A stretch of DNA of 64,000 nucleotides from Podarcis muralis (lineage: Eukaryota). Below the pieces are notes generated by a model. That model saw only the letters and a program-made list of their open reading frames with translations. It searched no databases and was not told the origin of the DNA. The stretch spans positions 20,026,001 to 20,090,000 of the forward strand of contig NC_135655.1 of assembly GCF_964188315.1 (NCBI RefSeq). The letters are read 5' to 3'. Below, one piece after another: positions 3,701 through 6,700 of this stretch. Every line of letters begins with the position of its first letter. The stretch's first letter is position 1. The position numbers were made by a program, and so were the translations under genes.

Positions 3701-6700
3701 CCAGGACTGGGAATATTGATTTGCAAATGTGGGCCTGTTGGACATGTTAAAAAGAATAAGACTTGTGTTTTTCAGAAAGGTTCTTTGTAAGAAAGCAGAA
3801 TCTTATCAGAACCTGTAACTCCATTCTTAGAAACTGGTGCAAAAACATGCACGTTAACAACTGATTGTTATAAGTAGCAATTTAAGCAAGTCCCAGTTTA
3901 CAGCTCTTATAGTATTAAAATAAAAATGGGGAGAAATTGCCAATGGTCTGGAATCTTTTCACACAGACAAATTAAATATAATGAAGAGGCTTGAGCATCT
4001 TGGTGCCAATATGTACAGGTTATTTTCTGAGTGAGTGGATGTCATTATTAAGTGGCTCTTCCTCCCACAGTAGCAGTCTAGTTTGTTTGTTTTTACAGGA
4101 AGAATATATAACAACTCATAATATACCAACAGAATATAATATAAATATAATTTTTTAAATGCTAGAAGTAGTTTTTTTTTAAGGTATGTCACAGTATGAA
4201 ATAATTTGCAATGATATCTGAAGGGCAAAGGACACTTTCTGAAAACCATTTTACAATATGAATACTGGTGATTCTTAAGAGTGTGTTTTTTGTTTGAGAT
4301 GCCATATGACTGCAACTTTAAACACCAGTCTCCTAAATATGCCAATCAAACTGTTTCTGTTGTAACCAAAAACATTTGGAGTTAAGCTTTAGCTGGTTTC
4401 TGTGAGCACACAGATGAGAAATTGGCATTTGGAGAACAAACATGGTTTACTTAGCTCCATGTGTAGCTACCAAACACCTTGATCAAAAAAATCTGATCTA
4501 GATAAATTATGGATCTAGTGTGCACAACAGTTTATTGATGATTAGATTGCAGTCAGCATAATCTGTAGAAGTGCAGACAACTCTGACAAGCAATACAGTT
4601 GGATTTCTTATTAGTTGGCATGTAGGTTTTTCAGCTGGAGTCCAACAGTGTAGCCAGGGCTGGGGCTTCAAATTTTTATAACTAGACTCCCACGAGAGGT
4701 GGAGGACTCTCCTTCCTTGGATGTTTTAAAGCAGAGGTTGGATGGTCACCTGCCATGTATGATCTAGTTGAGATTCCTGCATTGCAGGGGGTTGGACTTG
4801 ATGACCTCAGGGTCTCCTTCCAACTCTACAACGCAAGATTTATCAAACCATTATCCAAGAATGTGGAACTCCCTCTGAACTGAGATTAGACAGGCTACCC
4901 TCCTTGCTGAACTTGAGAGCGCAAGGCTTAAGACTTTCTTGTTCCAGCAGGCATTTTAGGATTGTACTTGGTTCTTTGATTAATTTGTACTGCTTTATTG
5001 ACCCATTTTCTGTGGATTGGTTTTATGTACACAGCTTAGAAATGTGAATAATTAAGCAGTATATAAATGTCTTAATAAGTCTACAGAATAATTACTAGAG
5101 TAATTACGAACCCAAAGGTTTTTTTGTTTTGTTTTAAGCAGACCTTTCTAAAGTGATCATATGGCGACATCTAGAAATTCCTATTCTGAATTTTTTGGTG
5201 AATCAATTGAGGAAAAGCCGACTACTTCGTGTTCATCCCTTACTGCAAGGGGAGCTGTTGTCCAGAGTGCCACTGGTATAGACAAGCTCTTGGGCATTGC
5301 TAAAGGAACTCTCTGGATTCCGACCTTTTGAATGGTGTCAAGAGTCAGGGACATGGATTTATCATATATCATAGCATATCATGTCATTACAAATATTCTC
5401 CTTGATGGAAATTGTTAGCTGGCCTGCTATTTGCTGCCTTAATTTAATGGATAGATGGGATGGGAAACCACTGGTCCTCCAGATGTTCTTAGACAGCAAT
5501 TCCCATTAGTTCCAGCCTCCAATGCTAATGATCAGGGATGATGGGAGCTATACTCTAGCAATCTCTGGAATGCCACAGGCTTCCCTTTCCTGACTGAATG
5601 CCTAGAGAATATTTGTAATGACATGATATGCTATGATATATGATAAATCCATGCCCCTGACTCTTGACACCATTCAAAAGGTCGGAATCCAGAGAGTTCC
5701 TTTAGCAATGCCCAAGAGCTTGTCTATACCAGTGGCACTCTGGACATTTTGCATTTGACTCATTAGCCTTCTTTTTACAGCCACTGATCATACTGGTCTG
5801 GCAACTAGATCTCTGTTTTTAACCCCCAAACATACTTAGAGGCTACTTTATTTCATTTTCTCACAATATGGTTTTTTTACCAAAGGAAATTAATATTTAA
5901 TAATGTGTGTATGCTAATCTTTCATGCATCGACTGGAAGACAAAAAGGTGATTTGGCACTGGCAGGAGGATCCTAAAACATCTTCTCAAATTAATATCAT
6001 GGATTTTAACATAACTTCTTTCACGTATACCTGTACTGTAATGAAATTTCTGCTTATATTGCTATATAAGTGACAACACATATAGGAACCAGACAGGGAG
6101 AAGACTGAATATTATGTTTCGGGCAAAGTATTCATGACCTAGTTATCCAACCTTTCAATTTCAAAATCTGGACAACACTAAATGTATACCAAATCCATTT
6201 TTCTTCCTTGATGGTCAGAAAACCTACTGCAATTAGTTTTTGTTTTTTTTAATCTATGCAGCACCTGAATTAAGAAACCTATGACAATTGAGACGCTCAT
6301 ATCATTTATAACTGATGGATAAGAAAGGTTTACTTCATGATAAATTAGTCCTAGCATTCCTTCCACTTTGTCAAAATGAGGTGTTAAGAGAAACATCTTC
6401 AATATTCTTTGAAATACCAGAGGTGTGCACGCTCATTTTCCATTTTGACACAAAGTGGATTAGCCTTCCAAAATCTGTATAAGATTCTAGCATTTGTAAT
6501 GCAAAGTTAGAGGAATCAAAACACAGACGCATTATCATGATCATCAGTCTTCTTTTAATGGGTGAAAAGCTGCATTGTCATTTTGTTTAGTTTAATACAT
6601 AACCACCCAATACAAAAAATGTTTAAGTTTCAGCTTGGTGTGGGCATCTGACCAGTTTTAACCAAGGGCAAATAAGGTGAGTTTAAAAATAAATAAAATA

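Follow-up and report, generated by a model that had tools for sequence, protein, structure and literature searches.

Template-switch mutations are the closest described relatives of the rearrangement reported here. In this class, a nearby fragment is reverse-copied once, a few bases are replaced, and two perfect inverted arms around a spacer are newly formed, with no need for a prior long repeat (Loytynoja and Goldman 2017, PMC5453318; Walker et al. 2021, PMC7954356). The type 3-2-1-4, whose mirror is 1-4-3-2, creates inverted repeats and accounted for 31% among the high-confidence human-chimpanzee events (PMC5453318). Introns are also known to have gained RNA hairpins, and even microRNA (miRNA) genes, through template switches (PMC8794818; PMC10710096). 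Here, we analyzed a stretch of 64,000 nucleotides (nt) of Podarcis muralis (assembly GCF_964188315.1, contig NC_135655.1, positions 20,026,001 to 20,090,000 of the forward strand), which is called the window throughout and in whose coordinates all positions are given. The element in question is an inverted repeat with two 142-nt arms in an intron of a minus-strand poly(A) polymerase gene. We conclude that it is very probably a young, still segregating structural variant that arose through a one-step templated inverted insertion.

Compared with these known systems, the locus shows both likenesses and differences. As in the template-switch mutations, a fragment lying nearby would have been reverse-copied a single time, replacing a few bases and leaving a near-perfect inverted repeat with a spacer. 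Unlike the great-ape gold-standard set, where the median copied length was 12 nt and the longest copy 128 nt (PMC7954356), 138 nt were copied here, so that this event is at or past the long end of the catalogued template switches. The template lies about 205 nt away, and the event is still polymorphic: the reads yielded both alleles (compare PMC5453318 and PMC7954356). Similarly, as in the template-switch origin of hairpins and miRNAs, one event pairs a whole stem (PMC8794818; PMC10710096). In contrast to a primary miRNA, with a stem of about 35 bp (PMC10710096), the stem predicted here is 142 bp with a loop of 204 nt. Fold-back insertions at DNA breaks, made by synthesis-dependent microhomology-mediated end joining (SD-MMEJ) or by DNA polymerase theta (Pol theta), offer a second comparison. 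They share with our locus snap-back priming with minimal microhomology, a few bases missing from the site and neighboring sequence copied in inverted orientation; they are mostly 5-34 bp long, usually with a template directly beside the break, whereas the copy here is longer (PMC5728401, PMC11724301, PMC11292364). Finally, as with inverted Alu or other short interspersed element (SINE) pairs in introns, which are ADAR substrates, a long intramolecular double-stranded RNA (dsRNA) would form in the intron of a pre-mRNA. Unlike those pairs, the arms here are unique sequence copied locally rather than two transposon insertions, and their pairing is near perfect. The event thus belongs to a known class and is notable for its length, its base-level resolution and the presence of both alleles in public data. 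In size, 138 nt exceeds the catalogued primate template switches and falls short of the inverted duplications at kilobase scale that are found in genomic disorders.

The inverted repeat was recovered by a repeat search and by a separate comparison, and it consists of the following parts, where X1 and X13 are two DNA sequencing runs described below.

5259..5400, no strand assigned: arm L, the probable original sequence and template of the duplication, with the copied core at 5262-5399; present in both alleles.

5401..5604, no strand assigned: spacer of 204 nt, taken as ancestral intron sequence; joined to arm L without a gap in each allele (X1 record 6 and X13 record 15).

5605..5746, no strand assigned: arm R, the probable derived inverted copy, with the inserted letters at 5606-5743 (138 nt); seen in the X13 joint and in X1 records 6, 7 and 8.

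The two arms, each 142 nt long, match at 141 of 142 positions, which is beyond the reach of chance. Their single mismatch (on the plus strand, A at 5351 versus C at 5654) becomes a U-G wobble in minus-strand RNA, and the stem stays unbroken. Complementarity ends sharply at the arm edges, with 0 of 14 bases matching past the outer ends and 3 of 14 past the inner ends. No target-site duplication was found, as the flanks GGAGCTGT and TTTTGCAT share no direct repeat. When 5159-5846 was compared with the 64-kb window by blastn at word size 9, only self and arm-to-arm matches were returned, with no extra copy of an arm or of the spacer. A window-wide scan showed one further inverted repeat of at least 100 nt, located inside a retroelement, and an Rfam search over 4300-6700 with E-values up to 1 gave no match. 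In two whole-genome contig sets, counted at 90% likeness or more, the arms had a depth of 2-20, near that of the unique flanks (about 12). An earlier note on this stretch, made from its letters alone, had reported the same arms, their one-base difference, the 204-bp spacer and the missing target-site duplication, all of which were reproduced by the two analyses. A multicopy foldback family, which that note had named as a finding that would speak against its proposal, was not what we observed: the arms are single-copy by depth, and the window holds no other copy.

Next, public sequencing runs were used to examine the arrangement. In one search, four studies contributed 14 DNA runs of the same organism, each with at least half of the sampled words from 4600-6400 (shares 0.76 to 0.95). 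The same search also returned one small run from a second organism (organism B) and some RNA runs. Four runs were compared over 4300-6700, namely X1 and X13 (DNA contigs), X19 (organism B) and X23 (RNA raw reads). X1 and X13 came from different studies, and their contigs had been built from 31-letter words.

As observed, the contigs of X1 contain all four junctions of the assembled arrangement. Record 5 (5036-5288) crosses from the left flank into arm L, and record 6 (5371-5634) starts 30 nt before the end of arm L, runs through the complete spacer and ends 30 nt inside arm R. Record 7, a unitig of 142 nt, has the same sequence as arm R, and record 8 leads from 5717 in arm R across the junction with the right flank. 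Breaks between contigs fall at the arm edges, where an inverted repeat necessarily interrupts a word graph. These read-derived contigs, which hold the novel junctions, exclude the assembly fold-back artefact put forward earlier as the main alternative, with the caveat that the support at each junction is 30 nt of arm.

Run X13 revealed a second allele. Its record 15, at a depth of 16.1, runs through 5259-5605, then TCATCA, then 5744-5773, and its joint from 5605 to 5744 skips 138 nt. In this allele, arm L and the spacer are retained and 5606-5743 is missing. The insertion is polymorphic, and both alleles exist. Breaks are also present in the X13 contigs at exactly 5259/5288 and 5744/5773, together with a depth of about 2 on 5596-5676; this suggests that the X13 sample has the repeat-bearing allele as well, as a heterozygote or as a pool.

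Comparison of the two alleles defined the change to the base. The allele taken as ancestral reads ...GAATGCCTAG-TCATCA-ACATTTTGC..., and the derived one reads ...GAATGCCTAG-(138 nt, reverse complement of 5262-5399)-ACATTTTGC.... Positions 5606-5743 are the reverse complement of 5262-5399 with one mismatch, and they replaced the 6 nt TCATCA. The junctions show microhomology of 1 nt (G, 5605) and of 3 nt (ACA, 5744-5746), both already present in the ancestral allele. Since this G and this ACA belong both to the old sequence and to the ends of the copy, the arms measure 142 nt although 138 nt were inserted.

A single switch and return accounts for the whole difference between the alleles. We propose that, during synthesis of the plus strand (or in the mirror arrangement), the growing 3' end would have left its template after 5605 and primed at 5400/5399, on the complement of sequence close by. 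From there, 138 nt would have been copied backwards, from 5399 to 5262, after which the strand would have returned to its original template at ACA (5744-5746), skipping the six ancestral bases TCATCA. In the four-point notation, the order along the sequence is 3 (5259-62), 2 (5399-5400), 1 (5605) and 4 (5744), with point 4 lying after point 1; this is the type 3-2-1-4. The earlier proposal of a recent local duplication of the template-switch kind thus held up, given the recovered arm-less allele, the junctions and the single-copy arms. The case shows a long perfect hairpin arising in a gene by one mutational step, with its before and after alleles available from public reads. It may, therefore, be useful for modelling this class of mutation and as a matched pair of alleles for testing new intronic dsRNA.

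Several observations weigh against this interpretation. The support at the junctions reaches only 30 nt into an arm, and no read or contig spans the full 488 nt. The depths in X1 are 16.5 for the arm, 6.8 for the spacer contig (5371-5634) and 11-12.4 for the flanks, whereas a homozygous duplication predicts twofold depth on the arm and onefold on the spacer. The low values possibly reflect the loss of hairpin fragments during library preparation or a more complex genotype, although this is a guess. Moreover, X1 may come from the individual behind the assembly and hence may not be an independent witness. The microhomologies of 1 and 3 nt could be a coincidence. Lastly, the contigs of X19, which look like low-coverage DNA of a relative differing at a few per cent of positions, cover much of the intron and reach neither arm nor the insertion site.

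Among the alternatives, repair of a DNA break is the one with the most in its favor, and we regard it as a possible though clearly less likely origin. It supposes a double-strand break at TCATCA that was processed by alternative end joining: a resected 3' end would fold back, prime near 5400, be extended and then be joined through ACA. Such a route corresponds to SD-MMEJ or to stem-loop extension by Pol theta, and its product would be the same as that of a template switch. The loss of six ancestral bases and the junction microhomology of 1-3 nt are in keeping with it, as is the report that two terminal base pairs can be enough for Pol theta to begin stem-loop synthesis (PMC11292364). A further study documents inverted insertions templated by fold-back at breaks, which are mostly 5-34 bp long, against 138 nt here (PMC11724301). 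The ancestral insertion site also contains CATCAA, an inverted match of TTGATG (5402-5407) beside the end of the template; yet this 6-nt inverted microhomology is unused in the final junctions. Priming at the CATCAA/TTGATG pair was rejected as the starting point, because it predicts the junction ...TCATCAAGGAGAAT... rather than the one observed. The pair may nevertheless have helped to bring the two places together. One event, read from sequence alone, cannot separate synthesis at a replication fork from break-repair synthesis, and either of them would give the templated inverted insertion that we favor.

The direction of the change was considered separately. Long palindromes are unstable and prone to deletion, so the inverted repeat might instead be ancestral, with the X13 allele derived from it when arm R was later deleted and 6 nt of filler took its place. 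No outgroup sequence covers the insertion site, which leaves some room for this explanation, and the polarity consequently rests on parsimony and on the states at 5398/5607. At site 5398, the X13 allele and organism B (X19) both have T, whereas the reference has C, which is matched by G at 5607 in arm R. Arm R therefore carries the derived state and not the one common to X13 and organism B, and the copy would have been made from an already derived haplotype. A deletion would also need to have removed one arm nearly exactly (138 of 142 nt) while leaving the spacer and the other arm untouched, and a single difference in 142 positions separates the arms. Furthermore, the edges of the length difference agree with the arm edges to within 1 and 3 nt; an insertion that itself created the arm should give such agreement, and a random deletion at a later time would be unlikely to do so. 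On these grounds (the edge match, the near-identical arms and the derived state at 5398), insertion appears far more likely than deletion, and we consider the latter quite improbable. The reading of 5259-5400 as the original and of 5605-5746 as its new antisense copy is thus supported, with its direction deduced as above.

We then analyzed the gene context of the insertion. Matches to PAP_NTPase, PAP_central and PAP_RNA-bind, found on separate exons, mark the minus-strand gene as a canonical poly(A) polymerase; the exons were scanned singly for protein families rather than as a joined spliced model. The downstream neighbor on the minus strand shows a Dpy-30 motif and a P-loop, as expected of AK7, and because of this AK7-like neighbor the gene is called PAPOLA-like. 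The features that concern the insertion are as follows.

7070..7154, minus strand: upstream coding exon, ending ...FFQKY-K (from sequence and reading frame).

2411..7069, minus strand: host intron of the PAPOLA-like gene, 4,659 nt, phase 2, starting with GTATGT and ending with TCAAAG (from sequence and reading frame).

2357..2410, minus strand: downstream coding exon (from sequence and reading frame).

5244..5324, minus strand: candidate poison exon (81 nt, a pseudo-exon), with acceptor ...TTCAAAAG|GTCGG and donor TTGCA|GTAAGG.

In carriers of the insertion, the pre-mRNA would hold two complementary 142-nt segments 204 nt apart, which are predicted to pair. The predicted fold of the minus-strand RNA over 5200-5800 (601 nt) is dominated by an uninterrupted 142-bp stem, at -354 kcal/mol with a z-score of -26.9. 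Being intronic, the hairpin presumably leaves with the intron. A long dsRNA duplex is the type of substrate that ADAR edits promiscuously, and processing by ADAR or Dicer is a reasonable expectation. In the RNA run X23 (1.9 Gb, from an animal whose genotype the data do not determine), no reads fell on either arm within the stretch 4300-6700; the reads seen there were on a high-copy repeat at about 4700-4866, with a trace on the repeat in the spacer.

The candidate exon lies mostly in an arm. Of its 81 nt, 66 fall inside 5259-5400 together with its acceptor, just as had been described, and the hairpin would bury this acceptor. Read in phase 2, the exon gives AA|G TCG GAA TCC AGA GAG TTC CTT TAG, that is, K-SESREFL-stop, with an in-frame TAG after 8 codons. 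Its donor, GCA|GTAAGG, is decent. The polypyrimidine tract of its acceptor is weak: pyrimidines make up 58%, versus 84% at the real acceptor of the intron, and the acceptor itself reads AAAAG|G. In the same intron, 10 pseudo-exons of the form AG...GTRAG pass an equally loose rule. In X23, the depth was 0 over 5191-5352 (the stretch compared was 4300-6700, and the flanking exons are outside it). The designation as a poison exon stood only in part: the in-frame stop is present, and the status as an exon found no support, given the weak acceptor and the zero RNA depth in this one run. We accordingly treat it as a pseudo-exon at the level of sequence only.

These observations bear on the function that the earlier note had proposed, a built-in antisense mask. 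According to this idea, the new arm pairs with the acceptor and most of the poison exon, tunes the expression of the poly(A) polymerase and was kept for that purpose. The note was right that 5605-5746 is transcribed first, as follows from the minus-strand intron 2411-7069. In favor of such a mask are an arm that holds an acceptor and most of a stop-containing pseudo-exon, and the predicted unbroken stem. Nevertheless, the variant is still segregating and is therefore not a fixed regulatory device or a fixed feature of the gene. In addition, the acceptor is weak, the intron holds 10 pseudo-exons of similar quality by a loose rule, the RNA depth on the exon in X23 was 0, and a literature search for PAPOLA with "poison exon" yielded nothing but two versions of a paper on RBM39. 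Altogether, the mask was not borne out, and we judge it very improbable. A neutral or nearly neutral new allele that is no regulator of splicing appears to be the best account, because the variant is segregating and the pseudo-exon is weak. The event, then, gives no evidence for a new regulatory mechanism.

A less specific effect of the hairpin has a somewhat better, though still small, chance. The hairpin might alter splicing, trigger heavy adenosine-to-inosine editing or yield small RNAs, in which case it would represent an inverted-repeat RNA element at its birth. If true, this would be an RNA element whose ancestral state is known and on which selection has not yet acted. Either way, the two alleles form a natural experiment, comparing a perfect 142-bp hairpin in the intron of an essential, widely expressed gene with none.

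The least tenable alternative, a fold-back transposon or miniature inverted-repeat transposable element (MITE) with 142-nt terminal inverted repeats, or else an assembly fold-back artefact, takes its appeal from the arm-spacer-arm layout and from the repeat family inside the spacer, but it is scarcely credible given the absent target-site duplication, the single-copy depth of the arms, counted at 90% likeness or more in two whole-genome runs, an arm-less allele that retains arm L and the spacer instead of a clean empty site, the novel junctions in the X1 contigs, and X13 contigs whose breaks lie precisely at 5259 and 5744. The absence of a target-site duplication, the single-copy arms and the form of the arm-less allele likewise agree with the earlier note, which had seen no transposon-like ends.

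The spacer does contain a repeat of its own. At about 5434-5595 lies a middle-copy, MITE-like sequence, whose depth of 260-855 compares with about 12 in the unique flanks and whose ends are degenerate and inverted (GGGAAACC...GGCTTCCC). The copy in the spacer is only weakly palindromic: its DNA fold had a z-score of 0.34, a lenient alignment of the spacer to its own reverse complement was equalled by 26 of 300 shuffles, and the repeat search found no palindrome in the spacer. Of the "older palindromic repeat" that had been placed here, the repeat itself was thus verified by its depth, and the palindromy turned out to be weak. A strong spacer hairpin that stalls the replication fork and triggers the switch was also considered; it was dropped as a cause since the palindromy is weak, and it remains speculation.

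Other repeats were observed in the window. The high-copy repeat at about 4700-4866 is SINE-like, with a summed word depth of 3-5x10^5 at 4705-4866 in two whole-genome contig sets. It is abundant on both strands in the RNA raw reads and is present in organism B too.

A much longer inverted repeat lies at 42194-42741 and 43990-44537, with 548-nt arms that are 100% complementary and 1,248 nt between them. AT-dinucleotide runs stand beside both arms. The open reading frame (ORF) at 42663-44390 on the plus strand has a reverse-transcriptase domain and a weak GIY-YIG match, and it looks like a Penelope-like retroelement. The perfect 548-nt arms could represent two elements lying head to head, an inverted duplication of very recent date or a fold-back made in assembly.

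Finally, long ORFs at 19515-22687 on the plus strand show an endonuclease-like N-terminal part and reverse-transcriptase motifs. Judged by eye, they resemble a long interspersed element (LINE), and this LINE-like copy lies inside the stretch that the poly(A) polymerase gene occupies.

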